NCBI GenBank assembly: GCA_024704765.1
Contig: JAKMXF010000309.1
Coordinates: 62,001 to 126,000, forward strand
Direction of reading: 5' to 3'
From: Oopsacas minuta
Taxonomy: Eukaryota; Animalia; Porifera
Length of the DNA stretch: 64,000 nt
Each line of letters begins with the position of its first letter. The first letter of the stretch is position 1. Position numbers and translations under genes: made by a program. The notes beneath the pieces are model-generated. The model saw only the letters and a program-made list of their open reading frames with translations, made no database searches and was not told the DNA's origin. Of this stretch, positions 538-64,000 are shown one piece after another.

Positions 538-1662
538 TTAATTGTAGATACTTTTGTGGTATGTGTTAATAAGAGGTCTGATCATCTCATCATGGAAATT
601 CTGATTTTTATTGAGTCCCTTAAGACAAACGCGAATTCCTACGCAAAATGAGTACACAAAACTTGGTACAAAATTAAGCAATCCTGCAATTGTTATGATT
701 CCTTTAATGATATCATGGAGTTTTAAAAGCGAAGATGATTTAGTTGATGGTAGCTGTATACAGGCCTCCTCCGCACTGCTAAAAGGACATTCAGAACCAA
801 TCATCATATCAACAATATTGTGGAAAATAACCGACACGATTAGTAAAAGTGTCCCAACTTTTAGTAGCAAGTAAAATACCCGAAAAGTTAGATAATTATT
901 GTATTCAAATTTATACAGTATTCCATTTCCATGGCATTGTTGTATTTCTCTAACTCTTCCAATCAATACCAGTCCTAACTTTCTTCCATAACGAATAAGA
1001 ATGAACCAGTCAATTAGTATAATGAAATATGTAAATATTCTAAAACGATTAATGGGTTTATTGGCGAACAGCAAAATAATTAAGGAAGAAAATATCCCAT
1101 ATGTTAGCAAGGGTAGCTGTTTATTTGATTTCCGATTGAGATATCTGTTGGTTAGATAACGCATTAATGAAATAATTAGTAGTAGGGTTTTATGTACGAT
1201 TACCAGTGATACTAATTCTAGCCATAGTATTATTTGTTTAAGGTATACTATAATTTTGGTAACGTATGCTAATTCTGAGTTATTTTTCGTATTATTATAT
1301 CTTTTCAAGTCACTATCAAGTAAGCCAAATCCTAGTATGTAAGCCTGTAGTGTGATATAGGTGATCTCAGTAATACAAATCGCTAATAGAAATCTTTCCT
1401 TCACAAGAAATGTAATTTCATTATATATTTTCCATTTCTGTCTTTCTTCCTCTTCAAAACTCATTCGAATATCTCTTTTCAATTGTTTGAGTGTTCTCAA
1501 TCGATTCTTGATTTTCAAAGACAATGTAATTATCCAAAATGAATATAGGGCGATTATTGATATATAAACTATTATACCAATAGTGAATTCACAATACGAC
1601 TGGGTATCATGGAACACAAAATCCCAAAATGAAGTTCTGTTTGTTTCATGACTAGTATTCAT
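538..1662 (-). CDS. Orphan intronless 7-TM-like membrane protein, family copy 1 (~374 aa)
   Basis: ORF 538..1686 begins at GTG; the likely true ATG is at 1662 (MNTSHETNRTSFW), matching the paralogue starts. About seven hydrophobic segments; shares KERFLL.ICITE, LMRYLTNRYL, IDWFILIRYGRKLG and FHDEMIRPLI with four paralogues. Confidence 0.85.
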   Translation of the reverse strand: MNTSHETNRTSFWDFVFHDTQSYCEFTIGIIVYISIIALYSFWIITLSLKIKNRLRTLKQLKRDIRMSFEEEERQKWKIYNEITFLVKERFLLAICITEITYITLQAYILGFGLLDSDLKRYNNTKNNSELAYVTKIIVYLKQIILWLELVSLVIVHKTLLLIISLMRYLTNRYLNRKSNKQLPLLTYGIFSSLIILLFANKPINRFRIFTYFIILIDWFILIRYGRKLGLVLIGRVREIQQCHGNGILYKFEYNNYLTFRVFYLLLKVGTLLLIVSVIFHNIVDMMIGSECPFSSAEEACIQLPSTKSSSLLKLHDIIKGIITIAGLLNFVPSFVYSFCVGIRVCLKGLNKNQNFHDEMIRPLINTYHKSIYN

Positions 1663-1699
1663 TTCTAGATTGTATATTAATCGCACTTTTATATTGTTA

Positions 1700-2560
1700 C
1701 TGTGCTACATAACTAAATAATGTCGTATCATAAGAGAAAAGGGACTTTCTTTAACTCAGCATGTAAGTACAATTTACACCCATTTCTAAATATGCTGAAT
1801 AGGAGATTACATCACTCTAATATGTTACTTATCTTTTCCAAAACAGTTTAAATAGTGAGTAGAGGAGTTATCTTGTTATGCTAAGATCTCCACCAAATTG
1901 GATTACATGCTAGCTTTAATAGTAACTGTAGTTGGTCATATATTAGTCATGTATTAACTATATATGATTTTACAACAGAACTCATTGCTGTAATCCTATA
2001 TTTTCTATAAAGACATTTGACATAGAAGAATTTCTAACGATAAATTCTCAAATTTGCGAACGATTGTACTCTGTATTAAGTTCCCTGTCCTGAGGATCGG
2101 GACCTGGAGAGCCGCTATATTTATAAATCTGGAGCGAAAGATGGAGTGGGCTTCATTTTTTGACGACCGATCGAATTCAGCTTACTTGTTACCCCATTAT
2201 GCTCTTTTAGAGCAGGCTTCTAGGTATATTTTGAGATTTCAACTATTTGTTTACTGTATATTCATAAAAACAACAAATAATTTCGCATATGATAAACAAG
2301 ATAAATACATTGTTATGCGACATCTCACAATTGTGAAATTCGGATTCAATACAACATTTCATAATCCTTTCCTTAACAACGGACAAACAGACACACAAAA
2401 ATAGCAAATTACAATATATATTAATTATCATTACTATAACTCTGTCATATCATAAGAGAAGGGACATTCTTTATCTCAGCATGTAAGTACAATCTTATCT
2501 CCACCTCTAAAATTTACTGATAAGGATATTACATCATTCTAATGATCTATTATTCTCTCC
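1700..2560 (+). repeat. Direct duplication of ~130 bp (1700-1830 and 2435-2560) upstream of 7-TM copy 1
   Basis: Both copies read tcataagagaa..ggac..tcttt..ctcagcatgtaagtacaat...ttacatca.tctaat. Confidence 0.7.
2225..2425 (+). mobile_element. Helitron/DINE-like non-autonomous element, 3' fragment
   Basis: Homologous to 33730-33980 and 13790-13935; ends aatcctttcctt.acaacggacaaaca... followed by aatatata. The superfamily assignment is inference. Confidence 0.5.
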
Positions 2561-4366
2561 CAAAACCATTTGAATCATGAAATTTAATCTTTTAACATCT
2601 TGGCTAAAACGAATTACATACTCTCTATTTATCTGATTGTCAATAAGGGCAGAAGTATATTGAATTGCCGATCAAATCGAGCATAGAAATTGTATGGCAA
2701 TAGATGAGGTCATAGGCGGATACAGGGGAATAGGGATGTATCCCGCATCAGGATAAATTTACTTGATATGAAATCATATTGGAATTAGAATATCATGTCA
2801 ATACACTGAAATATTGGCTATTCAAATTGAAATACCGAGTATTTTCGGCTCGCTTTGCACGCATCTCCACCTATATATCATGTTATATTATCCAAATTTC
2901 ACGGGTATACCTTGTAAAATCTAAGGATCGAAATTGCGTGAGCTAAAACGCTAGTATGTACAAGAATTATGAGCAAGACATGAATATTAATCAGTTGAAT
3001 AATTTCGGTATTTGAAGTTTCCTGACAGGAGGAAGCAACAAATGTTGTGATAAATATGGCTTTGTGTCTCTGGACCCCACTAGGAAGCTTATAGCGCCCT
3101 CTAGATCCCCAAATGGAGTTATCACCCGCCAGCAATTCCTGGATCCGTCAATGGATGATGATTCTGAAGATTGGTAGGGCCTAGGGGTAAAAAGAGTCGC
3201 AGTTTCTCAGCCTGTAGTCATAGTATATTGAAATGTCACCAAACTGTGGCCTACAGAGATATCTTACGTCATCCCTTGGTTGCTAGGGCGCTAAGCGACA
3301 GGATATACCATACTTCCCGAAATAAGCGCCGGGGGCTGAGAGTAGCTCCAAAACCTGTGAATAAAATTTATCACCACCCTCTAGAATAATATTTTGTTGA
3401 AACTTCCGCCATATTTGACCATGCTACAAATTAGGATAATTAGTTTCCTAAAGTCTATTGTATTTCTAATATTGACAAAATATTTAGAAGAAAAAAATGC
3501 CCACTCAGGGAAATACGATACCCGACACTACGTGCCTCGAAATTAAAAGTAGCTGAAATATTATGAATGCAGTATTCCTAATCCATCCCAAAATACTAAT
3601 GGTTTCCTGTGGAGGCACTGGAGTTGCTACGTATATGGAAATTTCCAATTTTTGTACAATCATGATGACGTAATAAATCCACGATGAGGATGTATTGGTG
3701 AAAATAGTGACACCTGGAGAGGGATCATATAAGGGGTACCTGTGATTTCAACTATCTAATATATCTATATTGGCTGAGCAGTGTCAAATAATGTGATTGA
3801 TTTTACGATAATCAAAAAGGTGACAATTACGTCATAATATCGTCATAGATATGAATTTTCTAGTATTATGTTCAATATATATTTGCATGTACTAAAATAC
3901 ATACGGGTATGATGATACGGTCTATATATTCCACGTTAAAACGATACATTTTCGTTGGTATAACCTAGTGCTTATACTTTCCACTCAAATTGGTCACGGT
4001 ACGCCATTGTAAATTAGTTTTTCCTGCTATTAGGGTGTCTTGGAACTATTACATGAGCCACAGAGATTTAGAAATTTACTACAAAATGTTAGCATTTTGT
4101 ATTGGATAATTAATATTATATTGAAAAATTCTTGTAAGAAATTTACTATAATATTTCTCATCGCAAAATTGTCTTACATAGAAAATTATGTTAAAATGAT
4201 ATATTCTCCTACCAAAGCAGATCCGATGTGAAAGTAGTATTTCTAATATGCTTTATGCTATCACTACTAGTTTAGTACTACAAATATGTTCGATTGGTTC
4301 ATCATATATATATGTACTTTGGTATCAGGATATATTTGTGTAATTATATTTATTTAAATCGAAACA

Positions 4367-5473
4367 ATGAATATAAGTTTTGAAACAAACAGAACTTCAT
4401 ATTGGAAATTTGTATTCTATGATTTCGGGTCGTATTGTGAATTCATTTTTATAGTATTAACTATTGGATCATTTATTGTGCTATACTTAATTTGGATAAT
4501 AGTACTGTCTCTGAAAATTCATACTCGATTAAGAAAGCTTAAACAACTCCAAACAGATAATCGATTGAGTTTTGAAGAGGAAGAAAAACTGAAATGGAAA
4601 ATATATAATGAACATACACTTCTTGTAAAGGAAAGGTTTCTACTAGTGATTTGTATTTCAGAAGGATGTTTTTTCGTGTTACAAGTTCTAATTATAGGCT
4701 ATATTAGAACTGAAAAAGCCTTGAGTATATTCGACAATGCGAACCAAGTATCAACATCCAATATAAATATAATGGAAGATATTAAATGTATTGTAATGCA
4801 ATTACTACAGGTGTTAATACACTGGATTATTCTACTAGTTATTGCATTGATGCGTTATCTAACCAACAGATATCTCATTCGGAAATCAAATAAACAGCTA
4901 CCCTTGCTAACATATGGGATAATTTCTTCCTTAATTATTTTGCTGTTCGCCAATAAACCCATTAATCATTTTAGAATATTTACATATTTCATTATACTGA
5001 TTGACTGGTTCATTCTTATTCGTTATGGAAGAAAGTTAGGACTGGTATTGATTGGAAGAGTTAGAGAAATACAACAATGCTATGGAAGCGGAAGGCTGTA
5101 TCAAATTGAATACAATAATTACCTATCTTTTCGGGTTTTCAACTTTCTACTCCAATTTGGGATACTTTTAGCCATCGTTCCAGTATTTCTCCGTATTATT
5201 GTTCGTATGATAGTGATACACATATGTCCCTCAAACTGTACGGATGTCTGTATTCACTTACCACCTACTATTTCATCTTTCCTTTCGATAAGTCCTCGTA
5301 TTACTGATGTAATGTCATTAATTGGTATAGTTATTACTATTACTCCCAAATTTGTGTACTCATTTTGCGTAGGAATTCGCGTTTGTATTAAGAGATTCAA
5401 TAGAAATCAGAGTTTCCATGATGAGATGATCAGACCTCTTATTGATAAATACCATAAAGATATTCTATATTAA
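4367..5473 (+). CDS. Orphan intronless 7-TM-like membrane protein, family copy 2 (368 aa)
   Basis: Intact ORF with the same family motifs as copy 1. Confidence 0.88.
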   Translation: MNISFETNRTSYWKFVFYDFGSYCEFIFIVLTIGSFIVLYLIWIIVLSLKIHTRLRKLKQLQTDNRLSFEEEEKLKWKIYNEHTLLVKERFLLVICISEGCFFVLQVLIIGYIRTEKALSIFDNANQVSTSNINIMEDIKCIVMQLLQVLIHWIILLVIALMRYLTNRYLIRKSNKQLPLLTYGIISSLIILLFANKPINHFRIFTYFIILIDWFILIRYGRKLGLVLIGRVREIQQCYGSGRLYQIEYNNYLSFRVFNFLLQFGILLAIVPVFLRIIVRMIVIHICPSNCTDVCIHLPPTISSFLSISPRITDVMSLIGIVITITPKFVYSFCVGIRVCIKRFNRNQSFHDEMIRPLIDKYHKDILY

Positions 5474-6534
5474 TAAACTGTATTTGTAAACTTTTTATCT
5501 ATAATATTTTATCTCATTTCTTTTCTGAGTGTTATTTGCTTGATTACTGTGGATATAATGAAGAAAATTGTTGTAACTCTAACTATCTGTAAAATTATGA
5601 AGGACAATAAAAGAAGTCTTATCCGAATTTTCAAATATGCAATATTAATAAATCCCAGATACTAACTCTTAACTGGTAATTAGAAATGTAGAATTCTTTG
5701 TTTGTCATTTAACATATACATATTTCTTAGTAGCGATTTTACATGTAACAGATATGCCCTCTCCATTCAAATGATATTAATTTACACATCCAACCTCCTA
5801 CGATTGGGTAATTACATAACTGTCAATTTTGTCCTCTACAGTAGTACTCAGTAACTCGACTTACCTATCGTTAGCAAAAAATGAGATTCTATTGCAATAC
5901 ACTACATGCTTACTTACATCAAAGTGAACGATTGATATCTAAATGTATATTCAAATTACCAAGGATGTAAAGAGCAATGCTGTTAACAGAATATGCTTGA
6001 TATCAATTGCAACTTTCAAATATGTATTTGACGGATAAGTATATATTTAACATGCTATACAATGTTTATAATATGTGAATCACTGTTTCCATACCTATTT
6101 GAAGGGAAAACAGCGATTCTAGAAAGTATCTTGATATTCGAAATAATAAGAATAAAATTGATTTTGAATGAGACAAGTCTTGGATGTTACCAGCAGCTAC
6201 TGTTATACACTCGTCCACATTTTGGACTACCTTGAAACTATTAGTTATACAAAGCAATAATACTCTATTTAAACTATTCAATGAAATGTTAGATAATCCA
6301 AAAACGAAGCAATAGAGTATTCTGGAGAGGTCATCGTGCGTTCAGAGATTTTTGAAACATGTGTCCTACAAGGCAATTACACAAGAATTATTGCATAGAT
6401 TCGATGCCAAAATGCGCCCTGGAAATTGGGAATCAGGATTAGGTGGTGAATTTTCAGACTGATGGGACTGTTAAAAATCTAAATAGTAAGTACGAAGACC
6501 GTGTAAGTCATATAGGGGGAAATAATTCTGAACT

Positions 6535-6988
6535 TCTGACAACATAACAATCGGTTGATTGTATTTTACATATTCAATGCTTCCTATAAAACTTGCAAAT
6601 TGTGGGTTAATTGTTAGACTATTGAAATGATTCAAGTCTCTTCTAAGTACAATGTAGAGTTGCAATATAAACTGTGACAAAATGCAACTAACCTCTGTAA
6701 TACAAATAATCATTAGAAAACTTTCCTTGGTAAGAAATGAGTTTCATTGTATAAGTCCCATTTCTGTTTCTCTTTCTCTTCACAAATCATTAAAATGTCT
6801 GTTTTGAGCTGTTTAAGTTTACTCTTTCGATTCTTCATCTTTAATCCCAATGTAATTATCCATGTTGTGTAGAGGATTAACATCAATGTGTAGCTTGTTA
6901 TATACCCTGATAAATTGAAATATGGCATATGACCATCAAATTCGCCCTCCAAAAATACCATTATGGGAGATTCTTGACTAATATTCAT
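6535..6988 (-). pseudogene. 7-TM family pseudogene, N-terminal half (frameshifted, truncated)
   Basis: ORFs 6713..6988 and 6471..6713 together give YTTWIITLGLKMKNR...KWDLYNET / IICITEVSCILSQ...IEYVKYNQPIVMLSE, matching copies 3 and 4, with a frameshift near 6713. Confidence 0.85.
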
Positions 6989-7415
6989 TCGATTAATGTA
7001 ATATATATAATTGTTATATTTCGTTGGAAATATTATACTTTTTCAAATTACCAAATCGTTAACATGAATAAGACTTTGGGAAGTGAAAGCTATTTGGAAT
7101 TTCTGAAATGGGATATCCTCTCCAGTTATATTTACATTTGTACTTCTAGAAACTAATCAAATCAGTGAAGTAATATGGCAATTATAGATTATAAACAATT
7201 GTGTAATCTTTAGCCAAAGTAATATAATTAAGTAAATTTTCCCAAAGTAAATGATCTAATCCCAAATATTCGACTACTTCCTTACAAGTGTTAAGAACGT
7301 ATGTGTATTTACTGACTTTAAAGTATTTGGTTTCGTATTGAATTTTTGCCAATAGTTTCGTTTCTGTTGTGACATTTAGATGTATATTGTTAAAGAGAGT
7401 TAGATGACGTAAACT
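6981..7415 (+). repeat. Inverted copy of the palindrome spacer at 12020-12455
   Basis: Reverse complement of 12020-12455, e.g. gggatatcctctccagttat and ttatagattataaacaattgtgtaatctttagccaaagt. Confidence 0.9.
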
Positions 7416-7424
7416 TGCAAGAAT

Positions 7425-7798
7425 CTGTATCAAATTGAATACAACAAATACCTATCTTTTCGGGTATTCAACATTCTATTTTGTTTAGGGTTACTGTTTG
7501 CGATAATAATTGGAATTTTTCGAATAGTTGTGGACATGTTAGCATACACATACCTTTGTAACAGTTTTGATTTGAAGGTACTATTTCTACAAAATTTTCT
7601 AGAATCTTGCTATATCTATTCAAGATTTTTGAATTTTTATCAGTAATTCCAGTATTGATTATGTTTACACCTTTTTAATTTACCCAATTTGTTTAATGAT
7701 TCTTGTTTGTGGTAAAACATTTCAAAAGAAAGCCGAATTTTCATGATGAGATGATCAGACCACTAATTGATTGCTATCATAGAGGTATTCTGTATTAA
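7425..7798 (+). pseudogene. 7-TM family pseudogene, C-terminal fragment (frameshifted)
   Basis: ctgtatcaaattgaatac...catgatgagatgatcagaccactaattgat...ctgtattaa matches the 3' third of copies 3/4 and their 3' flank, with several indels. Confidence 0.85.
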
Positions 7799-7899
7799 CC
7801 TGTATTTTATGTAAATGCTAATCGTTATCTGTGGGATTTACATAACATTACTAATCTATTGTATTATATTGTAATTGCTATATGTTTGCTTGTTCGTTA

Positions 7900-8240
7900 A
7901 TTGAATTTCAAAATCTGTATCTATGTTATTTATCTTATGATTGTCATATTTGAATATTTTTATACAATTTGCTAATAGTTCGAATGATAAAAACAATTTG
8001 GTTTGACAACAAAATATTGTGTTCATTGGTATGAAACATGTCTCAGAGCCTCAGCTGCACTACCAGTCTGATCGCTGTACATTTTTATCATTTTAGCCTA
8101 AAAGTAATGGTTGAAATAAACATATTTTGGTGTAGATTGTTACCTACCCACTAAATCTTTTTGATTGAAAGTCACATAGTTTACTCTGAGTTGATGTATA
8201 GTTATGCCTTGAGAAAATCACATAAGCTTGCTGCGTGCGA
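7900..8240 (+). repeat. Segment duplicated in inverted orientation at ~16140-16610
   Basis: catgtctcagag.ctcagctgcactaccagtctgatcgctgtacattt is the reverse complement of 16434-16480; similarity continues on both sides. Confidence 0.8.
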
Positions 8241-9364
8241 GTCCTTTTGATCTATCAAACGTTGTTCATTAAATATATCAAAAAGTTATATTTCACTAAT
8301 TTTAAGGTTTACGTGATACATTCTACATGATTTTCCTAACTATAATATACACTAATACTTTGTCATACCGTCTCAGGTTCTATTAAATTGATGTTACGAA
8401 TAAGAAAGTAAGATTTTGTGAAATACAATATCTTATCTAAACAGTTTAATGAGTCTATTATTTCTAGTTTTAGTGTACTGACTTCAGTGATTTGTTCTCG
8501 TTTATAATCTTTTTGTAAAATTCTGTCAGTTTTGTATGCTATCAGATATCCTTACACCAAAGTGAGCGTGAAATATATCAATAATTTGCAGATTATTTGA
8601 ATGGTATCAATTGCAAAAGTAAAGTCATAAATGAGCGAGACGAACATGTGTAAAGTTTGACTTGCGGAAATAGGTCATGAAATACATCAATCCACTAATG
8701 TAGCGGTGTAAAGACAACAATACAGATTCATTAATATTTGTTACAATGTCATTAATGTAAACCTAGTCCTATACAGCAAATTTATAATATAGAGAGCATG
8801 GCGTGCTAATGGGCGAATTTTGCAATTGTGCGAACTATTTACCATGCAAAACTGCACTCGATTTTAATTAGAATGTTGTTAATATGTGGATTTTGCTATT
8901 AGAAGAATTACTAATATGCAGTTTCCAATGAAATTTTCCATTCTCACTTTTGGTGAACTTTGTATAAGTAAAAATATCAGTTAATATGATCCTCAAATTA
9001 TAAGTATTCAAAACGCAGCGACAGTGAGAATGATTAGGATTACAAATCACAAATTCTCTAATCTCAATAGTAATATTATTTCGTAAGGAAACTACACCTA
9101 TGTTAGCACTGTATACAATATTATATTACTTCACTAAAGAACCACAGAATTTGCATGATGGAATATCTAATTATTTCACAAATACAAATATGATATATTC
9201 ATTCCATCATATCAATTAAACTATCCTGTATAGCTGTATTATGTAATAGTATGTCAGTAATGTACCAAATAAATATAAGGAAATGTATGTATGGGTATAG
9301 AATTATACACATATATATCTACCATTGAATTAGCTTGTGAAAACTTCACTAAATAAAAGAAAAT

Positions 9365-10489: not shown

Positions 10490-10748
10490 TAACGTGTATT
10501 TTGCTGTAAATGCTAATCGTTATCTTTATGGATTACATAACATTACTATTCTATATTATGTAATTGTAATTGTTGTCTCTTTGTTTGTTAATTGCCTAGC
10601 CAAGGATTAATAGAATGTTGTTTCGAATTCGAATTTTTCTATTCTGGGTGTCGCATAACTATATACTAATGATTTATCGTGTTATCAAAGAAAAATTCAC
10701 CACATGTAAATGTATTTGTTGATTTCATGAATATAAAGTAAACAAATA

Positions 10749-11113
10749 TAGTCAAACCTGCCTAACGGCCACCTGCTCAACGCGGCCAGCGTTCTTCATT
10801 TTGCTCCCTCGCTGACGGTAAACCTGTCTGTGACGGCCACTACGTCGGTATAGCGGTCAATTCCTTTATCTAAGGGCCACTTTATATGGTGGTCGCTTCC
10901 CATAATGTCTACCATTGACAAGACCCTTGGGTGTTCATCATTAACTACTTCCACTGTACTATCTTTTATATCGATCACTTGTCTTAAAGACCGAGTTCTA
11001 TTTATCACTACCATTAACATAAAGTACTACCAAACTAGTGTATAACGATCAACCTCTCTATAACGGCCATTTTGGTTAGTCCCTTCGGTGGCCATTATAG
11101 ACAAGTTTGACTG
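10749..11113. mobile_element. Tc1/mariner-pogo-type MITE
   Basis: Imperfect TIRs (t)agtcaaacctgcctaacggccacc ... ggtggccattatagacaagtttgactg, flanked by TA, with internal TIR-like subrepeats. Confidence 0.75.
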
Positions 11114-13935: not shown

Positions 13936-13993
13936 ATTAGAATGTTATGTAAATCCATAAAGATAACGATTAGCATTTACAGAAAAATACACG

Positions 13994-19891: not shown

Positions 19892-19892
<1 letters not shown>

Positions 19893-53083: not shown

Positions 53084-53094
53084 TTAAATATGTC

Positions 53095-53460: not shown

Positions 53461-53592
53461 AATGTGCAAAAAGTTATGATAAGTGAGTGAGTAATATACT
53501 CATTGGAGGAATGAATTGTATTGAGTATCGAACTCATGGGTTTAAGATAATAAAATAATAAGTTTTCAAATCCAAATATCTGCACTGATAAA

Positions 53593-55236
53593 ATGAAAGA
53601 ATTTAGAAAGTTACGAATACAATTTTATGCAAGAGAATTTGCATCAAATAGTTCATATATAAAGAAAATTCACATTGGTATAGGTAATATAGTAATAATC
53701 ATGAAATTAAACCTTCTAAAAATTAATTGGATCTTGGAAGAGATAGCATTCCTTTTAGTATTAGCAATACCTGTGTCAGTAGAATGCTTTACAGAAGGAT
53801 TGCATATGAAAGTGAGTAATATACTCATTGGACGATCATCAGGGAATAATATAGCATTATTGATAAGTGCTCTATTTATCGGCCAAACAGTTACTTCCAT
53901 TATCTCGTATCCAATAGCTGAAGGGAGCGCTATATACGTCAACATACTATGCTCTCAGGCGTATGGAGCAAAACAATACAAACAAGTAGGACTCTACTTC
54001 TACAGAGCTCTATTCATGTCAGCTCTCACCTACATACCAGTATTCACAATATTGATTAGTATCCGTCCTATCGTCTACTTGTTATTTCAAGATGGGGAGT
54101 TAGCTGAGTATAGTGGTAGCTACACAGATATCCTATGTTTCGGTTATCCTGCATATTTGTATTATAAAATAGGAATTCGTTTCCTTCAAGCATTGAACAT
54201 AGTTTGGACTCCAGTATTGTATCTTCTCATAGGAATAACTCTGAATGGAATAATACAATATATTCTCATCTTTCAATACAATACGAATATACAAGGTGCA
54301 GCAGCTGGTTACGTCATAAGTAATTACTTAGTTGCAGTTTTAGTATTCTCACACATACAACTCTCTCATGTACACAAGACAATTTCACATGAATGGAGTA
54401 TTGAATTGATTTCTGACTGGTATCATACAAGTAAATATGCAATTTCTACCATCGTTCAAACTTTAGGTAGTTCTGCTCCATTAGCTATTTTACCTATATT
54501 AGCAATTGGTGTGTTTGCTAACGATAAGAGACAACTAGCCATTTACTCTATTTTATACTCGATTGTATGGGTTTTTAGTATGGGAGCAATGGGATTTTCA
54601 AGTGCTATGACAGTTCGTGTTGGTAATTTGTTAGGAGCCGATAATCCAAGAAGAGCAAAGAAAATCACGATTTTAGGTATCGTCGTTGGTCAACTTCTAT
54701 TGACTTTGATTAATCTAGTACTGTTAAGTATAAGCGAACCATTGAGCCATCTCTTTACTACAGATACTGACTTTGCAAAAGAATTAAAATGGAACATCAT
54801 GTGGTTATCATTCTTCCTCAATTGTATGTCGAACTTTATTATCCAGGGCGTCATGAATGCCTGTTGTAAACAAAGAATACACACAACATTGAAGTTTATT
54901 TTTCAAATATTTCTTGGAACAATTGCAACATTCTTGTTAGTAAATTTTGTTGAATGGAAAGCACAAAGTATTTTCGTTCAGTATACGATCAATACTGCCT
55001 TTGTCATGGTAATCGATCTCTTCATACTCTTTTGCAGTGATTGGAGAAAGATTGCTTCGGTTGTCAAGACAAATACGGAAACGAATACTAGCACTGAAAA
55101 AGAGCCCCAACGTATATTTCAAAATCTTACCTTGATTAAACTAATCCTTAGCTCAAAGGCATTTATACTATCAAGGTATCTCATTTGTCTAGCTGTTTCT
55201 ATTACAGGTTTTACTACTATACTGGTCCTTAGATAG
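53593..55236 (+). CDS. MATE/SLC47-like transporter M5' (547 aa)
   Basis: Intact ORF; C-terminus identical to M5. Confidence 0.9.
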   Translation: MKEFRKLRIQFYAREFASNSSYIKKIHIGIGNIVIIMKLNLLKINWILEEIAFLLVLAIPVSVECFTEGLHMKVSNILIGRSSGNNIALLISALFIGQTVTSIISYPIAEGSAIYVNILCSQAYGAKQYKQVGLYFYRALFMSALTYIPVFTILISIRPIVYLLFQDGELAEYSGSYTDILCFGYPAYLYYKIGIRFLQALNIVWTPVLYLLIGITLNGIIQYILIFQYNTNIQGAAAGYVISNYLVAVLVFSHIQLSHVHKTISHEWSIELISDWYHTSKYAISTIVQTLGSSAPLAILPILAIGVFANDKRQLAIYSILYSIVWVFSMGAMGFSSAMTVRVGNLLGADNPRRAKKITILGIVVGQLLLTLINLVLLSISEPLSHLFTTDTDFAKELKWNIMWLSFFLNCMSNFIIQGVMNACCKQRIHTTLKFIFQIFLGTIATFLLVNFVEWKAQSIFVQYTINTAFVMVIDLFILFCSDWRKIASVVKTNTETNTSTEKEPQRIFQNLTLIKLILSSKAFILSRYLICLAVSITGFTTILVLR

Positions 55237-55844
55237 TTCTATGGTACTCTGCTCTATGTATTATCTAATAGTACTCTGATTTGTAAATTGATGAGGATTA
55301 AATACATAAATGGTAACTCGTCCCCCATGGTACCTGTGTTGACAGAAGAGCGCCATGTTTGCGCTTGCGTTCTGTTTCCGATAATTCTAGCACTCTCGCT
55401 CACTTACTTTCCAATAATCTCACCACTCCCATATTTTCACCTACAGTAGAGTCTCTGAATAACGGACACGTTGGAGACATCGTTCCTGTCCCTCTCAGGG
55501 ACTTGTCCGTTTCTTGGAGACTGCTAAAGTAATACATTTATGTTACTAATTCATTCCGTTTCAGGAGGTTTGTCCGTTGTAGAGGGATTGTTCGCTTCTT
55601 GGAGTGTCCGTTATGGGAGACTCCACTCTATATTCTATGATATTACGTGTAGCTATAGGAATAAATCGGCACTAGCGAGTTGAGTGCAAGGTAAATTCAT
55701 TTTCCAAAGATTTGAATGCCATTTTTTGTTAAGATTGATAAGCTCAACCAATTTTACAGTATTGAGTATAAAGAGCGTTAGATAAATTTTGGAGCTCTCC
55801 CTTTGAAAAAATATTGAGTCTCTCTCTTCGCTATACTAAAAAGT

Positions 55845-56420
55845 GTCCAGCCGACAGACTGGTAGTGCAGGTCAGGGTAAGGTGTTTTGTTCTTTTCATG
55901 GGGGGAATGCCCACCTTAATCCCCATGTAGATGCCGCAATGCCCCAGACCCTGACTGCTTTTGGGCCCTGGATCTGGAAAATGTTTCAGGATATTCAATA
56001 TTATTCGTCCCCTACATAATTTTCAAGTCCATCCTGAAATCCTATGGATTAAATTCTGAATAATGACCCTGCAATTACCCCTGTCTAACATTTGAAAATG
56101 ATTTATCTACCATCAATTTGAAATATGTGCAAAAGGTGTGAAAATATGATTAATCATATGATAAATCATGTAGATATAGATTTGAAATGTAAAATTTGAA
56201 ATATACAAACTCTGTAACCTCTGAATTGCAGCTAAACGAAATCTCTAGTATGGCTGAATAATTTGCAAAAAGTTGTGAAAATATGATTATTCATATGATA
56301 AATCTGTGAATTTGTAACTTTCAGACTCTCAAAATCTCAAAATCGTACTTTACGTACCCAATTACCCCTAACAACATGTTGAAATCTAATCTCTAGCTTG
56401 CTTTTTTATTTGGACATCAC
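55845..56420 (+). repeat. Copy of the cagactggtagtgcag repeat family, right arm of the MATE palindrome
   Basis: Mirror of 49400-49985; has ~100 extra bp near 56160-56270. Confidence 0.8.
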
Positions 56421-56582: not shown

Positions 56583-58107
56583 TTATTCTATTTGTAGTTT
56601 GCAACAAAAGATTACAAATATAGAAACACTAGCTGCCAAAAAGCATATATATCTGCACATTACGAAAGCTATTGAATGCGAGATGTTAGTGTTATTATGA
56701 GGATATTCATCAGCTGGTTCTTTTTGTGTGTCCGTATTATGTTTGACTAAAATTGTAATACTTCCCCAATCACTAGTACGGAATAAGATTAGCAATGGAA
56801 TCACTATGCAAATGACATTGGAGACTGAATATTGAACGAAGATACTTAGAACTTTCCATTCAACGAAATGTACCAACAAGACTGAAGCCATCGTGCCTAA
56901 AATTACTTGAGCCATAAATTTAACTGCTGTTTGTATTCCTTGCTTACAACACGCATCCATTACCCCTTCTATCACAAGTTTTATGTCAGTATTTAATAGA
57001 AAAGAGAATATTCTTATATTCTGAGTTAATTCTATTGCAAAACTGACATCTGTCGTGAAGAAATAACTCAATGGTTCACTAGCTACAAATACTATGATAT
57101 TACACATTACTGTTATAAGCTGTGCTATGATTAAGTGCAATATTGCTGCTTTTCTAGCTCGTTTTAGTTGATTGGCTCCTGACAAATGGCCTATACGAAT
57201 TGTGGTGGCGCTGGACAGCCCCATTATACCCATGCCGATTATCCACCAAATAGAGTATATAATTGAGTATATTGCTAGCTCTTTCTCACTGCCTGCCATC
57301 AATCCAAGGCACACTGCCGGTAGTAGTGTCACTGGTACTGTTCCAATAAAGATTTGAATAATTGGAACAACGGCGTATCTTGCTGTATGATACCAGTCAG
57401 AAATCAATTCAATACTCCATTCATGTGAAATTGTCTTGTGTACATGAGACAGTTGTATGTGTGAGAATACTAACAGTGCAACCAAGTAGTTGCCTATGAC
57501 GTAACCAGCTGCTGCACCTTGTATATTCGTATTGTATTGAAAGATGAGAATATATTGTATTATTCCATTCACAGTTATTCCTATGAGAAGATACAATACA
57601 GGACCCCAAACTATGTTCAATGCCTGAAGGAAACGAATACCTATTTTATTGCACAAATACGCAGGATAACCGAAACATAGAATATCTGTGTAGCTACCAC
57701 TATACTCAGCTAACTCCCAATCTTGGAATAACAAGTAGACGATAGGACGGATGCTAATCAAGATTGTGAATACTGGTATACAGGTGAGAGCTGACATGAA
57801 TAGAGCTCTGTAGAAGTAGAGTCCTACTTGTTTGTATTGTTTTGCTCCATGCGCCTGAGAGCATAGTATGTTGACGTAGATACCGAAACCTTCGCAAATT
57901 GGGAAGGCTATAATGCATGTGACTGTTTGACCAATGAATAGTGCACTTAACATTAATGAAATATTATCTCTTGATGTCCTTCCAATGAATATATTACTCA
58001 GTTTCATTTGTAGTCCTAGTGTAAAACATTCTATTGCATTTTGGGAGTGCTAAAACTACAAGGAGTATCATCTCTTCAAAAATCCATCGAACCTTATGAA
58101 TTTTCAT
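56583..58107 (-). pseudogene. MATE copy M6, full length but with a +1 frameshift in a 4-nt homopolymer at 58039-58042
   Basis: ATG at 58107 gives MKIHKVRWIFEEMILLVVLALP; removing one A restores NAIECFTLGLQMKLSN, joining the 474-aa ORF. Could be an assembly error. Confidence 0.7.
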
Positions 58108-58991
58108 ATCTACCAATACTAGTCTTTCTTGAAATTGCTCTTTATATACGTACTATGTATTTACTCTCTATTCTTATTCATATTCTCAGTTCCAGTGGGT
58201 TATCTAGTTGTATTACAAGATTTTTGTAAGATAGTCGTATTTAAGAGCCATAAATCTAACTTTTAGCGGTTGTCTCTAATATTGTGTAACTTTGATGAAT
58301 TTTCCCTATATAACAGAATGCATGCCTTGCTGGATTGCGCTGCGCGGCTATCGAACGTTTTGTGTTCTCCTAATGCTGTTGGGGTACTTCTAATATGTCT
58401 ATGGAGCATATAAATAATATATTGTTTATACTATTAAAACGCTATTACCCGTATTTCCCTGAATACGCGTCTGGGGATAGGAAAACGCTCCAAGACCTAT
58501 GAATTAGAATTTATTACCACTCTCTAGAAGACTTTTGTTGAAATTTACGCCACATTTGATCATGCAACAAGTTATAATAATTATTATGTGAGTATTTTCA
58601 CACCTCAGGCCCGCCAGGCCAAATATTTCATGACAATCCCATGTAATCCATTACGTATATATGTTACCGTCCAAATTGAGTATCCGATAAACTGAGTTAA
58701 CGCTTTGTAGGTTGTCAACACTCATTATTTCGCCGATTAGTTGATTCCAAGCAAGAATTAAGTTTACGGAGAAATTTTTTGATTTAGAGCCTCGGGTGTT
58801 ATGGAAATGAGTGTCACTTGCAAGTCTTAAACATTTCTGCATATCTTTTGTAACTAAGAGTTGTAAGAATTAAATATTAGCGTATATTGTCTGAAGGATA
58901 CTATCTTTCTGTCAGGGTGTGCCAGCCCATATTTACTTGTATGATAAACGGAGCACTTATCAATAATGCTTGATTATTCCCTTATGAACGA

Positions 58992-59425
58992 TTTGATTCA
59001 ATTATCAGGCACCCACAAAAGAGTGTTTTGCATTCTCTATTCCTGTAATCAATTACACTTGGATTGTATTTAAGGTTCACTAACAGCGATGAATGTTCTG
59101 AATAATGAGCACTATGTCAACTTTTATGGGTCACTTCAATAATCCTTAAAAGGTGACCTTTCTATTAAGCTAATACAAATTGGAGTTCATCGAGGCGATG
59201 ATCGTTCACCTCGATGAACACCAATTTGTATTAGCCTAATAGAAGGTCACATTTTAAGGATTATTGAAGTATCCTTTTCATGTTGTAGGGGTATTTCAAA
59301 ACAAAATAGTGCACATCATTGGGAACGATCATCGCTGTTCGAGAACCTTAAAATAAATGCAAGTATAATTGAAACAGGAATAAAGAACGTAAATACTTAT
59401 GTGGGTGCATGATAATTGAATCAAT
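58992..59425. repeat. Imperfect ~430-bp palindrome between M6 and M7, centred on a collapsed foldback end
   Basis: Centre gttcatcgagg-cgatgatcgttca-cctcgatgaac; arms cttcaataatccttaaaa.gtgacctt.tctatta and taatagaaggtcacattttaaggattattgaag. Confidence 0.8.
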
Positions 59426-59620
59426 TAGTTCAAATATAAAGAAACTACACTTTAGAATTGATAATATAGTAATAATCATGAAATTAGATGTTCATTAACG
59501 AATTGAATATTTGAAGAGATAGTATTCCTTTTCGTATTAGTAATACCTGTGTCAAAGAATGCATTACAGAATGATTACAGATGAAAGTGAGTAATATACT
59601 CATTGGAGAAATAAAATGAA
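59420..59620 (+). pseudogene. Decayed MATE 5' stub upstream of M7
   Basis: Near-identical to the reverse complement of 52320-52530. Confidence 0.75.
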
Positions 59621-59819
59621 TGAATAGTAATTGAGCATCGACTCATGGTTTTAAGATAATAAAATAATAAGTTTTCAAATCCAAATATCTGCACCGATAA
59701 AATGTAAGAATTTATAAAGTTTAGAATAGAATTTTGCACGCAAGAGAAATTGAATCAAATAGTGAATATATATAGAAAAATCACTTAGAATTTGGAAAAT
59801 TATTGAATAGTCAATAGTC

Positions 59820-61358
59820 ATGAGAGTGAAAGTTCTAAAAACTAATTGGATCTTGGAAGAGATAGTATTCCTTTTCGCCTTGGCACTACCAACTTCTATA
59901 GAATGCTTTACAGAAGGATTACAGATGAAATTGAGTAATATATTCATTGGAAGAAGCTCTGGGAATAATATTGAAATATTAATAAGTGCCATGTTTATCG
60001 GTCAAACAGCAATTACTATCATCAACTATCCGATAGCTGAGGGGATTGCTATATACGTAAGCATACTATGCTCTCAGGCGCATGGAGCAAAACAATATAA
60101 ACAAGTAGGATTCTACTTCTACAGAGCTCTATTCATGTCAGCTCTCACCTGTATACCAGTATTCACAGTCTTGATTAGTATCCGTCATATCGTCTACTTG
60201 TTATTTCAAGATTGGGAGTTAGCTGAGTATAGTGGTAGCTACACAGATATTCTATGTTTCGGTTATCCTGCGTATTTGTACTATAAAATTGGAATTCGTT
60301 TCCTTCAGGCATTGAACATAGTTTGGGGTCCTGTATTGTATCTTCTCATAGGAATAACTGTGAATGGAATAATACAGTATATTCTCATCTTTCAATACAA
60401 TACGAATATACAAGGTGCAGCAGCTGGTTACGTCATAGGCAACTACTTGGTTGCACTGTTAGTATTCTCACACATACAACTCTCTCATGTACACAAGACA
60501 ATTTCACATGAATGGAGTATTGAATTGATTTCTGACTGGTATCATACAGCAAGATACGCCGTTGTTGCAATTATTCAAACCATTATTGGGGCAGCACCAG
60601 CGACAATACTACCTGTAATATGTATTGGAATGGTCGCAGACAATAAAGAACAGCTAGCAATATACTCAATTACATTCTCGATTTGGTGGTTAATCAGCAT
60701 GGCTGCCATCGGGTTTGGCAGTGGTATAACAGTTCGTGTAGCACATTTGTTGGGAAAAAATCAATCCAAACGAGCTAGAAAAGCAGCAATATTGGACTTA
60801 ATCATAGCACAGCTTACAATAGTAATGTGTACTATCATAGTATTTGCAGTTAGTGAACCATTGAGTCATCTCTTCACGACAGATGCAAATTTTGCCAAAG
60901 AGTTAACGTGGAATCTCAGAATTTTCTCTTTCCTACTCAATACTGATATAAAGCTTGTGATACAAGGAGTAATGAATGCGTGTTGTAAGCAAGGAATTCA
61001 AACAGCAGTTAAATTTATTTTTCAGACAATTTTAGGCTCAGTGGCTTCAGTTTTGTTGATACATTTTGTTGAATGGAAGGCTCTTAGTATCTATGTCCAA
61101 TTCGCAGTTACAAATACAATTTGCTCAGTAATTCCCTTGCTCATACTTTCTTGTAGTAACTGGGAGAAGATTACTGATGTTGTCACACAAAATACCAACA
61201 AGAAAACTAGTAACCTACAAGCTGAAGAATTTCATAAACTCAAAACTTCTATCCTAAATTCAAAAAGCTTCATAGTTTGTAGGTATTTAGCTTCTTTGGC
61301 GATAAGTGTTTGTGTTTTTGCAATAATACTATATGTATCTGTCATTAAAGCTTATTGA
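59820..61358 (+). CDS. MATE/SLC47-like transporter M7 (512 aa)
   Basis: Intact ORF with a type-A C-lobe (TARYAVV...). Confidence 0.9.
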   Translation: MRVKVLKTNWILEEIVFLFALALPTSIECFTEGLQMKLSNIFIGRSSGNNIEILISAMFIGQTAITIINYPIAEGIAIYVSILCSQAHGAKQYKQVGFYFYRALFMSALTCIPVFTVLISIRHIVYLLFQDWELAEYSGSYTDILCFGYPAYLYYKIGIRFLQALNIVWGPVLYLLIGITVNGIIQYILIFQYNTNIQGAAAGYVIGNYLVALLVFSHIQLSHVHKTISHEWSIELISDWYHTARYAVVAIIQTIIGAAPATILPVICIGMVADNKEQLAIYSITFSIWWLISMAAIGFGSGITVRVAHLLGKNQSKRARKAAILDLIIAQLTIVMCTIIVFAVSEPLSHLFTTDANFAKELTWNLRIFSFLLNTDIKLVIQGVMNACCKQGIQTAVKFIFQTILGSVASVLLIHFVEWKALSIYVQFAVTNTICSVIPLLILSCSNWEKITDVVTQNTNKKTSNLQAEEFHKLKTSILNSKSFIVCRYLASLAISVCVFAIILYVSVIKAY

Positions 61359-61482
61359 AATAGTATAATTATTCCTTGGATACCTGTTATAAGAAGCACT
61401 TGGGATTGGGAGTATGTGTTTCTATAACCGGAGTTGCAGTACAAGGGTCTCTCAAATTTAGTCCCACCAGCTAATGGTTCTG

Positions 61483-61544
61483 AGCTAAGGCACCAGGGCC
61501 ACTGTGTCAGATGTTGTTAACACAATGGCCCTGGTGCCTTAGCT
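61483..61544. other. GC-rich stem-loop (19-bp perfect stem, one mismatch, 5 more bp)
   Basis: agctaaggcaccagggcca (61483-61501) and tggccctggtgccttagct (61526-61544) are exact reverse complements. Confidence 0.9.
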
Positions 61545-61600
61545 GACTGGTATCATACAGCAAGATACTACGGCGTATCTTGCTGTATGATACCAGTCAG
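61543..61600. other. Perfect 26-bp hairpin with 6-nt loop made of MATE coding sequence
   Basis: ctgactggtatcatacagcaagatac-tacggc-gtatcttgctgtatgataccagtcag. Confidence 0.95.
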
Positions 61601-62313
61601 AAATCAATTCAATACTCCATTCATGTGAAATTATCTTGTGTACATGAGAGAGTTGTATGTGTGAGAATACTAACAATGCAATTAAGTGGTTGCCTATGAC
61701 GTAACCAGCTGCTGCACCTTGCATACTAGTATTGTATTGTAAAATGAGAATATCCTATATTTTTCCATTCAGAGTTATTCCTATGAGAAGATACAATACA
61801 GGACCCCAAACTATGTTCAATGCTTGGAGGAAGCGAATACCTATTTTATTGTACAAATACGCAGGATAACCGAAACATAGAATATCTGTGTAGCTACCAC
61901 TATACTCAGCTAACTCCCAATCTTGGAATACTAAGTAGACGATAGGACGGATACTAATCAAGATTGTGAATACTGGTATACAGGTGAGAGCAGACATGAA
62001 TAGAGCCCTGTAGAAGTAGTGTCCGATTTGTTTTGTATTGTTTTGCTCCATACACCTGAGAGCATAGAACATTTACGTATACACCGAAACCTTCAGCGAT
62101 TGGATAAGCTATCAGGCCAATATACACTTGACCGATAAACAAAGAGCTTAACATTAACGCTACATTACTCCCTGATGTTCTTCCAATGAATATATTACTC
62201 AATTTTATCTGTAATCCTTCTGTAAAGCATTCTATAGAAGTTGGGAGTGCCAAGGCGAAAAGGAATACTATCTCTTCCAAGATCCAATTCATTTTTAGAA
62301 CTTTCACTCCCAT
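61575..62313 (-). pseudogene. MATE copy M8: N-lobe only, two frameshifts, truncated after SDWYHTARYA
   Basis: ORFs 61954..62313, 61755..62072 and 61539..61724 tile the N-terminal half. Confidence 0.88.
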
Positions 62314-62509
62314 AACTATTGACTATTCAATAATTTTCCAAATTCTAAGTGATTTTTCTATATACAAATATTCACTATTTGATTCAATTTCTCTTGCGTG
62401 CAAAATTCTATTCTAAACTTTATAATTCTTACATTTTATCAGTGCAGATAGTTGGATTTGAAAACTTATTATTTTATTATCTTAAACCCATGAGTTCGAT
62501 ACTCAATTA

Positions 62510-62720
62510 CAATTCATTCATTTTATTTCTCCAATGAGTATATTACTCACTTTCATCTGTAGTCATTCTGTAATGCATTCTTTGACACAGGTATTGCTAA
62601 TACGAAAAGGAATACTATCTCTTCAAATATTCAATTCGTTTAATGAACATCTAATTTCATGATTGTTACTATATTATCAATTCTAAAATGAACTTTCTTT
62701 ATATTTGAACTATTTGATTC
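62510..62720 (-). pseudogene. Decayed MATE 5' stub upstream of M8
   Basis: Same stub as 52320-52530; mirrored again at 63930-64000. Confidence 0.75.
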
Positions 62721-64000
62721 AATTATTATGCACATTCCGAGCATTTACGTTCTCTATTCATGTTTCAATTATGCTTGCATTTATTTTAAGGTTCTCGAAC
62801 AGCGATGATCGTTCCGAATGATGAGCATTATTTTGTATTGAAATACCCCTGCAACATCAAAAGGATGCTTCAATAATTCTTGAAACTTGACCTTTCTATT
62901 AAATTAATACTAATTGGAGTAACATCGAGGTGAACGATCATCGCGCGTCAGACAAACTTGTATTCTATCAGTAACCCATGAGCTCGAAACTCACTGACAA
63001 TACAATCATTTCATTTTTTTCTAACTGATGATTCACACAGGATTCCGGGGCGTATGCATTAGGTCGAATTTCGGTGTTGGCATTAATTCAAATTCTGAGC
63101 GCATGCATTAGGTCGAATTCAATTTAGCTATGTTGTCGATAGATAAATATAGAAAATGGATTTATAGAAACGAGGACGTAATTGGACATTTTATTGTATT
63201 AATTATAAACCCGTACCATTGGGAGGGGATTAAGGATTTTGTTCACTACCTTATCGGTCTGGGAGTTTTCATTTGTACTCGTTATTAAGCTACCTAGGGG
63301 CGGGGATGTGGAGTCCATGCTAATTTTGTGTTTGGATGGACCTTTGTTGGATTAATTATCAGAAAAGTTTGCAAAATGGGGGATCGCTGGATTTTTTGCT
63401 TTTAAAACGTTTGTGCAGGTTTATTAGAAATTTAAGGATGTATTCCGTGTTCCTCCAAAATGAATTAGCCCTAAATGAGATATTCGCAGCTAATATCCAT
63501 TCGCTCTATCGACAACATAGCCAAAATTGAATTCGACCCAATGCATGCGCTCCGAATTTGAATTAATGCCAACACCGAAATTCGACTTAATGCATACGCC
63601 CCGGAATCCTGTGTGAATCATCAGTTAGAAAAAAATGAAATGATTGTATTGTCAGTGAGTTTCGAGCTCATGGGTTACTGATAGAATACGAGTTTGTCTG
63701 ACGCGCGATGATCGTTCACCTCGATGTTACTCCAATTAATATTAGTTTAATAGAAAGGTCACGTTTTAAGAATTATTGAAGTATCCTTTTGATGTTATAG
63801 GAGTATTTCAATACAAAATAATGCTCATCATTCGGAACGATCGAAGCTGATCGAGAACCTTAAAATAAATGCAAATATAATTGAAACACGAACAGAGAAC
63901 GTAAATAGTCTCTATGTGTATGATAATTGAATCAAATAGTTCAAATATAAAGAAAATTCACTTTAGAATTGATAATATAGTAATAATCATGAAACTAAAT
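62650..64000. repeat. Palindrome (arms ~62650-63148 and ~63503 to window end) containing the foldback element with a nested inverted-repeat insert (63045-63604)
   Basis: catcgaggtgaacgatcatcgcgcgtcagacaaac mirrored at 63690-63726; inner ccggggcgtatgcattaggtcgaatttcgg mirrored at 63575-63604. Confidence 0.85.

Follow-up and report, generated by a model that had tools for sequence, protein, structure and literature searches.

The window analyzed here, a 64,000-nucleotide stretch of contig C309 of Oopsacas minuta, holds two neighboring gene arrays, both confirmed by self-BLAST. The order and orientation of their copies are as given by one public assembly, a hybrid build made with SPAdes, Pilon and GapFiller (PMC10280926). 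The first array consists of five single-exon orphan genes of a predicted GPCR fold (7TM) at 0.5-18 kb:

538-1662, minus strand: R1, single-exon orphan 7TM gene with an open frame; homogenized block at 868-1014
4367-5473, plus strand: R2, 7TM gene head-to-head with R1; block at 5000-5146
6533-8225, no strand assigned: scrambled 7TM by-product region (self-BLAST)
6533-6988, minus strand: N-terminal 7TM piece in the scrambled region
6976-7414: copy of the R3/R4 palindrome spacer in the scrambled region
7314-7894, plus strand: C-terminal 7TM piece in the scrambled region, where a further flank piece is also present
8821-15648: R3/R4 palindrome, arms of ~3.4 kb, 89% identical, center near 12238, spacer of ~430 nt
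9365-10489, plus strand: R3, 7TM gene in this palindrome; block at 10022-10168
13994-15118, minus strand: R4, 7TM gene in this palindrome; block at 14318-14464
16960-18090, plus strand: R5, 7TM copy with one in-frame TGA, the open frame ending at 17907; block at 17617-17763

A Pfam search of the 7TM proteins gave no match, to the Pfam 7tm family or any other. An AlphaFold2 model (pLDDT 76) obtained only E-values of 0.1 or more in Foldseek; the best 50 VIA-align matches of the model were all GPCRs, with Z of 13-15 over ~250 residues, where a helical-bundle arrangement alone can give a Z of ~13. Relatives of the family were found only in ENA assemblies taken as those of other glass sponges. The 147-nt block that the copies share is the cytoplasmic TM5-loop-TM6 part of the protein.

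The second array comprises ten MATE copies, at 40-64 kb in the window and extending to 71 kb:

26524-27103, plus strand: interspersed repeat, with at least 663 first-look candidates genome-wide
40531-42160, minus strand: M1, broken MATE copy with premature stops and frameshifts
43127-44674, minus strand: M2, head-to-head with M3 (pair 43127-47963); block at 43946-44290
46422-47963, plus strand: M3, head-to-head with M2; block at 46800-47144
48840-49255, plus strand: MATE stub, an upstream region and the first ~112 codons
49256-56606: M4/M5 palindrome, 94% identical over 3.1 kb per arm
49449-49985, 53091-53482 and 55844-56411: copies of the 26524-27103 repeat inside the array
50593-52236, minus strand: M4; block at 51400-51744
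53593-55236, plus strand: M5; block at 54085-54429
56583-58007, minus strand: M6, with an N-terminal frameshift, head-to-head with M7 (pair 56583-61429); block at 57384-57728
59820-61358, plus strand: M7, head-to-head with M6; block at 60204-60548
61483-61600: two back-to-back hairpins at the M8 break
61569-62306, minus strand: M8, truncated, N-lobe only, ending at about codon 246
61569-64000: besides M8, the window part of the M8/M9 palindrome, 94% identical, center at about 63322, running beyond the window to 65076
just beyond the window end: M9 (plus strand), then M10 (minus strand)

Pfam matched MatE (PF01554) with E-values of 1e-27 to 4e-35, in two stretches each for the six open-frame copies M2-M7 and in a single stretch for the broken M1. 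With two MatE repeats and twelve or more TM segments as the mark of the family, the copies belong to it; the hydropathy profile has 11 peaks, one of which, close to the C-terminus (493-511), could represent a 13th TM, and two of the TMs expected (about 140-160 and 360-380) do not reach the threshold. In these genes the block is 345 nt long and covers the latter half of the N-lobe (about TM4-TM6) as far as the N-lobe/C-lobe junction. In the public gene set, M1 is fused with an adjoining sulfotransferase.

The first-pass annotation had described the two arrays as sharing one architecture, with copies of mostly alternating orientation, multi-kb palindromes, truncated or scrambled by-products between the genes, and one near-identical block per family. 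All of these features are present (self-BLAST, pS): the orientations read - + + - + for R1-R5 and - - + - + - + - + - for M1-M10; the R3/R4 and M4/M5 palindromes span several kilobases; and by-products are represented by the scrambled 7TM region, the MATE stub and M8. The same annotation saw none of this in the single-copy genes between the arrays (TRP, LIAS). Duplication does occur in that region, however: it contains a direct pair (34.2-37.9 kb), and its repeat at 26524-27103 has copies within the MATE array. Moreover, single-copy genes lack donor copies, so that the absence of conversion in them is uninformative.

Arm identity in the palindromes of both arrays ranged from 77% to 97%. The highest value was that of M9/M10 (97%), and the older inverted pairs were M2/M3 (89%), M6/M7 (82%) and R1/R2 (77%). 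Of the M8/M9 palindrome, the window takes in the left arm, the center and ~500 nt at the beginning of the right arm. Differences between arms were mainly substitutions (146 mismatches versus 9 gap openings in M4/M5, 50 versus 0 in M9/M10), and the arm genes are open frames, except for the truncated M8 and the frameshifted M6. Near-identity was confined to sub-tracts such as the C-lobes of M4/M5 and of M9/M10 (pS 0.01 in each), and these are not palindromes of the sex-chromosome type, with long arms >99% identical throughout. The end of the MATE stub directly abuts the left arm of the M4/M5 palindrome, and the M8 break coincides exactly with the 3' edge of the MATE block. At this break, a perfect 26-nt hairpin (61543-61568/61575-61600) copies MATE coding sequence from the block 3' edge in snap-back fashion; the adjacent hairpin, of 25 nt (61483-61544), occurs nowhere else in the genome. 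The self-complementary center of the M6/M7 pair (58985-59432) is almost confined to this array. Self-BLAST also revealed direct repeats offset by 7.3-7.5 kb and 4.2-4.5 kb, i.e., head-to-head pairs had been copied as units, so that few inversion events are needed; the alternating orientation is largely accounted for by tandem copying of such pairs.

Across 7TM codons 221-270, DNA identity was 97-100% in all five copies, versus 30-70% in the flanks. The block of R5 is still homogenized despite its in-frame TGA; that in the scrambled region is decayed, without homogenization. An additional tract, at alignment codons about 171-240, is shared by R1 and R2 only (97-100% identity). In the MATE genes, alignment columns about 480-800 were at least 93% identical in all pairs, versus 45-70% for the 3' half between types. 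At synonymous sites, the 7TM block had a pS of 0.03-0.14 versus 0.56-0.67 in the flanks for all pairs in the window except two that have recently exchanged sequence (R3-R4, flank pS 0.09; R1-R2, 0.33), with binomial p values of 1e-7 to 1e-10 in the six pairs tested. For the MATE genes, pS was 0-0.16 in the block versus 0.5-0.8 in the C-lobe between types (p = 1e-21 to 1e-33). The description of one near-identical internal block per family between diverged flanks therefore holds at synonymous sites also.

Between genomes, by contrast, pS in the 7TM block was 0.6-0.9, which shows that its synonymous sites are free to change, and in the MATE block it was 0.43-0.61 between species. Another species, D, had the same MATE contrast (block pS 0.05-0.07, C-lobe 0.38-0.71). 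Thus, in both families, and again in species D, the block is more alike within a genome than between genomes at synonymous sites. An unlinked MATE copy on contig C111 has escaped homogenization of the array, with a block pS of 0.20-0.24 versus the array copies. GC3 in the window MATE copies was 0.27-0.33 in the block and 0.29-0.40 in the flanks, and the blocks, having no GC3 excess, give no sign of GC-biased conversion; enrichment in GC is a common, though not a defining, trait of converted tracts. The universal block is the most conserved segment of each protein, also across species.

Segment trees of the MATE genes were incongruent, as the first-pass annotation had anticipated. The C-lobe tree contained the trans-specific clades {M6,M7,D1,D2} and {D3,E1,M2-M5}; in the block tree D1-D3 grouped together (support 100/100) and the window copies lay within branches of at most 0.03; the single copy E1 also fell among the latter, but its branch was long (0.21). 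For clades chosen after inspection of the trees, AU tests rejected the C-lobe topology with the block data (p-AU 2e-68) and the monophyly of the window copies with the C-lobe data (p = 0.005). C-lobe types are common to several species and are older than the species splits, whereas the block clusters by genome. For the 7TM flanks, monophyly of the window copies was not rejected (p = 0.34), so that the old age of these paralogues rests solely on saturated flank pS; branch lengths were incongruent between segments.

The GENECONV-type check that had been proposed for the paralogues gave significant mosaic tracts in many pairs, at the permutation floor of p = 0.0005 (shuffled polymorphic sites), and mosaic patches were visible in a site-by-site table of the MATE copies. 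M1, an inverted counterpart of M7 with 94% identity, carries an M2-M4-type patch immediately before the block; M5 has an M6/M7-type patch at about 53950-54070; and M2 and M3 have zero differences at polymorphic sites over a 534-nt stretch of the codon alignment. In seven contig groups from other assemblies, protein identity was 94-100% in the MATE block versus 36-77% in the C-lobe, and the 3' edge of the block was identical, after a DWYHT motif at the N-lobe/C-lobe junction. One further contig group lacked homogenization (block identity 57-83%). Independent assemblies of other glass sponges also have an inverted MATE pair adjoining LIAS. Conversion and mosaicism are therefore present at this locus, and the block recurs in other glass sponges: the pattern is one of concerted evolution restricted to a domain and due to gene conversion, and the mosaic patches are real.

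Both arrays are very probably ordinary birth-and-death multigene families shaped by two generic DNA-repair processes. The first is local duplication, often inverted, in which breaks inside or beside genes would have yielded palindromes with spacers from about 0.1-0.4 kb (R3/R4, M4/M5, M8/M9) to about 3 kb (M9/M10), as well as scrambled pieces and truncated stubs; the alternation then results from the copying of head-to-head pairs, in tandem and as units. The inversions themselves probably arose by fold-back or template switching. The second is interlocus gene conversion between linked copies, repeatedly overwriting a segment still similar enough to pair, which coincides with the most constrained part of each protein. 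The flanks would be too diverged for pairing, and conversion there is probably selected against, so that they stay old; tract edges would thus be set by a homology threshold and selection. Occasional longer or offset tracts create chimeras, e.g., M1, M5 and R1/R2. The block/flank pattern may have a functional meaning.

The first-pass annotation had gone further, proposing that a recurrent process seeded by inverted repeats generates variants of both families. Its ingredients (inverted duplication, block-wise conversion and chimeric copies) are all real and have strong statistics (pS contrasts, AU tests, GENECONV-style runs), but the single family-directed diversification system was not supported. 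A dedicated system of this kind, perhaps with hotspots at block edges, would fit the layout common to two unrelated families 20 kb apart, the MATE block edge at one residue in seven contig groups, the breakage of M8 exactly there with a snap-back hairpin, and the chimeras. We nevertheless regard it as highly improbable. A search in cis of the two clusters revealed neither a locus-linked enzyme nor recombination signals: among non-array open frames of at least 90 amino acids in and between both arrays, no Pfam family was matched, so that reverse transcriptase, transposase and recombinase were not detected in cis, and neither an Rfam family nor a tRNA was found in the window. The universal block is homogenized instead of varied. 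The same structure occurs in an inverted pair (palindrome) of NHL-repeat genes on the same contig, which do not encode membrane proteins, and in an additional 7TM-like pair on contig C340, whereas the 7TM array of a related sponge consists purely of direct copies. Most of the alternation is accounted for by copying of pair units, and ordinary conversion is expected to end tracts at homology cliffs.

Even less probable is that all copies are young and that hypermutation or positive selection made their flanks diverge fast, the block being an unmutated remnant. Young 7TM pairs do have pN/pS near or above 1 (1.35 for R3-R4, not significant, p = 0.15), but synonymous sites of the flanks are saturated too, MATE C-lobe types recur in other species, and the window copies were rejected as a monophyletic group. 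A DNA- or RNA-level constraint on the block (an embedded element or extreme codon constraint), which would suit its status as the most conserved protein segment across species, has hardly any credibility given the differences at synonymous sites of the same blocks between genomes, the empty Rfam and tRNA searches, the non-homogenized MATE contig group and the drift of the C111 copy. Finally, although assembly of a hybrid de Bruijn build with Pilon and GapFiller could in principle have mis-threaded or over-polished identical tracts of 150-530 nt, longer than the largest k-mer, least credible of all is an origin of the palindromes or identical tracts in chimeric long reads, the assembler itself or polishing with short reads, since the arms differ by 3-23%, mostly by substitutions, most arm genes keep open frames, and block homogenization and the inverted MATE pair by LIAS recur in independent glass sponge assemblies.

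Birth and death with domain-limited conversion is a known process, not a dedicated diversification machine, and no new mechanism is revealed. Region-restricted gene conversion was reportedly described in clustered protocadherin genes by Noonan et al. in 2004, and similar cases are the globin, opsin, MHC and olfactory-receptor clusters. As in protocadherin-type clusters, linked paralogues share one segment homogenized within species and diverged between them, specificity-determining parts escape conversion, and segment trees are incongruent. The present case differs in that it concerns a hexactinellid sponge and single-exon genes, for MATE transporters and for an orphan family of predicted GPCR fold; the constant MATE segment ends at a lobe junction in several species, and many copies are inverted. 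Resemblance to DGRs, AID-driven conversion of chicken immunoglobulin pseudogenes and V(D)J recombination is in outcome only (constant and variable parts, templated copying): we saw neither reverse transcriptase nor recombinase here, and neither signal sequences nor template/variable-repeat asymmetry, the changes are germline and evolutionary, and what is copied is the constant part.

Palindromes that bear genes and undergo arm-to-arm conversion occur on primate X and Y and willow sex chromosomes (PMC8327919, PMC3403216, PMC7023750). The present arrays likewise have gene pairs on inverted arms that exchange sequence (the C-lobes of M4/M5 and M9/M10), but their arms are 1-3.5 kb and 77-97% identical overall and also take tracts from non-arm donors, and nothing links this contig to a sex chromosome. 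In Caenorhabditis elegans, closely spaced inverted duplicates are in excess, the inverted share among linked duplicates in animals generally is 20-50%, and preferential homogenization of close inverted pairs has been proposed (PMC3194840). Here, too, inverted local duplicates are common and arise directly; our orientation control covered 283 kb of one contig, with one further inverted pair and five direct duplicate families outside both arrays.

It is conceivable, though we think it unlikely, that glass-sponge genomes have unusually active short-tract ectopic conversion and fold-back inverted duplication, which maintain families with a constant core plus a variable module, and that the MATE tract edge, pinned at the lobe junction in many species, is a recurrent break and exchange point. 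If so, whole C-lobes would be swappable between copies.

As a natural case of concerted evolution limited to one domain, the locus is very clean: the different C-lobes of the copies have persisted from a time before the species split, and yet the copies share an N-lobe core that is rewritten within each genome. Whole-gene trees of paralogues will mislead here, a warning for annotation. For sponge biology, the arrays represent a MATE repertoire that has expanded, with the C-lobe as its variable half, and a previously undescribed, predicted GPCR-fold family whose cytoplasmic TM5-TM6 face is kept uniform.

The 61.46 Mb assembly comprises 365 contigs, and the window occupies positions 62001-126000 of a contig of 423,723 bp, with a GC content of ~33%. 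A cluster of five single-exon ORFs (R1-R5) of ~370 amino acids each, encoding a 7TM family, lies at 0.5-18 kb. From 40.5 kb, a MATE array with seven MatE (PF01554) copies plus fragments was identified with Pfam inside the window, and this array (numbered from M1) goes on beyond the window end with M9 (+) and M10 (-), a convergent pair. In the M9/M10 spacer is a 490-aa open frame (67672-69144, +, in extended window coordinates) that had no Pfam match. The two arrays are separated by an ankyrin/ion-transport (TRP-like) gene, NHL-type frames, LIAS and a Gal-3-O-sulfotransferase gene. The first-pass annotation had treated the intervening genes as single-copy; this description has to be modified, because a direct tandem pair of frames is present at 34233-37936 (-), so that the middle region holds duplicates too. 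The two frames (34260-35470 and 36611-37936) share ~70-84% identity over parts of their length; any match to a beta-propeller is weak at best. The TRP-like gene has an NHL-repeat frame (24967-25632, -) lying antisense between two of its exons, those for ankyrin (23448-24074) and ion transport (27617-28555), and this frame may represent a nested, intronic gene. A 687-aa public gene model (P0091, 38761-42160) combines Gal-3-O-sulfotransferase and MatE domains, and probably represents the sulfotransferase gene merged with the broken MATE copy M1.

The 7TM family had no credible Pfam match, whether searched as single sequences or as all 21 aligned members. An AlphaFold2 model with 21 homologues as input (pLDDT 76) contained seven long helices and one terminal helix. 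GPCRs made up all of the 50 best matches to this model using VIA-align (Z 13-15 over ~250 residues); Foldseek against the PDB returned weak E-values, none of them significant, and a protein atlas gave only weak leads (≤0.90), to THH1/TOM1/GPR137-like 7TM families. Homologues were found solely in ENA assemblies, at 43-53% identity, and in a related species the family forms a five-copy array, all direct. Two distant relatives of 384 aa (23-24% identity) at L009 (G000:C340:190800-195900) form a convergent palindrome, 88% identical over 1.76 kb with a spacer of 214 nt. A decayed C-terminal fragment of the family at 7314-7652 has a dispersed copy at L008 (G000:C123:15500-18000), so the fragment itself has been copied onto another contig.

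As the first-pass annotation had proposed, each family contains an internal block that is nearly identical across copies, with diverged sequence beside it. In the 7TM genes, codons 221-270 were 97-100% identical in DNA across all five copies, with flanks at 30-70%. Synonymous divergence (pS, Nei-Gojobori) was 0.03-0.14 in the block and 0.56-0.67 in the flanks, except for R3-R4 (0.09) and R1-R2 (0.33), and the contrast was significant in six pairs (p 1e-7 to 1e-10). In the AlphaFold2 model, the block is predicted to take in TM5 and TM6 over their cytoplasmic halves, along with the intervening loop. In the MATE genes, codons 128-243 had a pS of 0-0.16 in all pairs, M9 and M10 included, whereas pS between C-lobes of different types was 0.5-0.8 (p 1e-21 to 1e-33). 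By hydropathy, this block covers the second half of the N-lobe (~TM4-TM6) and ends in the linker before TM7; in relatives, the homogenised segment begins near TM3.

Several copies are mosaics. M1 is M7-like at both ends and M2-M4-like directly before the block, M5 is M4-like apart from a ~120-nt patch of M6/M7 type, and M2 and M3 show no differences at polymorphic sites over 534 nt of the codon alignment, with a pS of 0.5-0.75 further 3'. R1 and R2 share an additional tract (codons 171-240). In a GENECONV-style permutation of polymorphic sites, long shared runs were significant for many pairs in both families. There was no signature of GC-biased conversion in the blocks. For R3 versus R4 (9365-15118), pN/pS was 1.35, suggestive of relaxed or diversifying selection; with p = 0.15 this was not significant evidence of positive selection.

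The possibility that constraint on the nucleotides themselves keeps the blocks alike is rejected by block pS between genomes, which was 0.6-0.9 for the 7TM genes and 0.43-0.61 for the MATE genes. Another glass-sponge assembly (L004) contains three MATE genes (D1-D3) around LIAS, in the order + - LIAS -, with a pS of 0.05-0.07 in the block and 0.38-0.71 in the C-lobe. The C-lobe tree, which included the single copy of a further species (E1), contained the trans-specific clades {M6,M7,D1,D2} and {D3,E1,M2-M5}. D1-D3 came out as a clade (support 100/100) in the block tree, where the window copies lay on branches of ≤0.03, with E1 among them on a long branch. The segment trees are thus incongruent in MATE: in AU tests, for which clades were named only after the trees had been seen, the C-lobe topology was rejected by the block data (p-AU 2e-68) and monophyly of the window copies by the C-lobe data (p 0.005), and monophyly of the D copies was not rejected (p 0.11).

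Five further glass-sponge MATE arrays were compared at the protein level. Within each of seven contig groups, block identities were 94-100% and C-lobe identities 36-77%, the fall coming at the same residue, after a DWYHT motif. Between contig groups, the block was 52-90% identical (98% for two near-identical groups), and in a contig group with unhomogenised MATE paralogues block identity was just 57-83%. An unlinked MATE copy on contig C111 has a C-lobe nearest to that of M7 (pS 0.31), and its block differs from that of every array copy (pS 0.20-0.24); homogenisation thus acts locally, within the array. Both in the window and on C123, pseudogene fragments of the 7TM family carry a decayed block.

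By self-BLAST, orientations were - + (- + fragments) + - + in the 7TM cluster and - - + - + - + - + - from M1 to M10, with inverted pairs 77% to 97% identical. The alternation claimed by the first-pass annotation is thus seen in both arrays, but it does not require many separate inversions. Direct repeats occur at offsets of 7.3-7.5 kb (M2 to M4, 91%; M3 to M5, 84%) and of 4.2-4.5 kb (M6/M7 to M8/M9, 86-87%). Judged from the contig sequence, these two sets show that head-to-head pairs were copied in tandem, each as a unit, so that few separate inversions are needed. The genes within the arms are mostly open frames, the exceptions being the truncated M8 and M6, which has an N-terminal frameshift. 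The assembly was made with SPAdes in a hybrid approach and polished with Pilon, and identical tracts may have been over-polished or mis-threaded. However, the arms differ across kilobases, overwhelmingly by substitutions, and the same pattern recurs in independent assemblies of other species, so the phenomenon is real. Copy order and orientation, taken from the assembled contig alone, are provisional, and long reads are still needed.

Duplication breakpoints lie within genes. The end of a MATE stub (48840-49255, the first ~112 codons) coincides exactly with the left-arm start of the M4/M5 palindrome, and M8 ends at ~codon 246, where the homogenised block has its 3' edge. The M8 break carries a perfect 26-nt hairpin, derived from an inverted copy of the adjoining MATE coding sequence; it adjoins a second hairpin, unique in the genome (DNA fold at the M8-break hairpins, z = -13.5). 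This looks like snap-back synthesis in break repair, and is direct, small-scale evidence for a fold-back type of event. By extension, such events could also be the source of the larger inversions.

Transposon seeding of the head-to-head junctions was rejected: a 448-nt self-complementary element, nearly confined to the MATE array, consists of the centre of the palindrome together with upstream sequence and is not mobile. A 580-nt repeat (26524-27103) is a genuine interspersed repeat, and was rejected as a junction seed since it lies inside arms and not at their ends. Inter-gene frames of at least 90 aa had no Pfam match, and no Rfam families or tRNAs were found. Duplicates outside both arrays, in 283 kb of the contig, comprised five direct families and one palindrome:

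117109-119268 (window coordinates; L015:4109-6268), NHL-repeat gene palindrome of 2.2 kb with two genes, arms ~94-96% identical, spacer ~100 nt

In other animals, 20-50% of linked duplicates are inverted (PMC3194840). The diversification system envisaged in the first-pass annotation was not borne out, the controls revealing no machinery encoded nearby, an NHL-gene palindrome on this contig, a palindromic pair of distant 7TM relatives on C340 and an all-direct 7TM array in a related species. The mechanism is very probably generic. Local duplication, frequently inverted, would build the arrays, and a constrained core still alignable between copies would be repeatedly overwritten by conversion. 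This homogenises the universal block, and diversity in the arrays stems from old flanks and occasional chimeras. The arrays are a well-documented case of a known kind of process, and not a new system.
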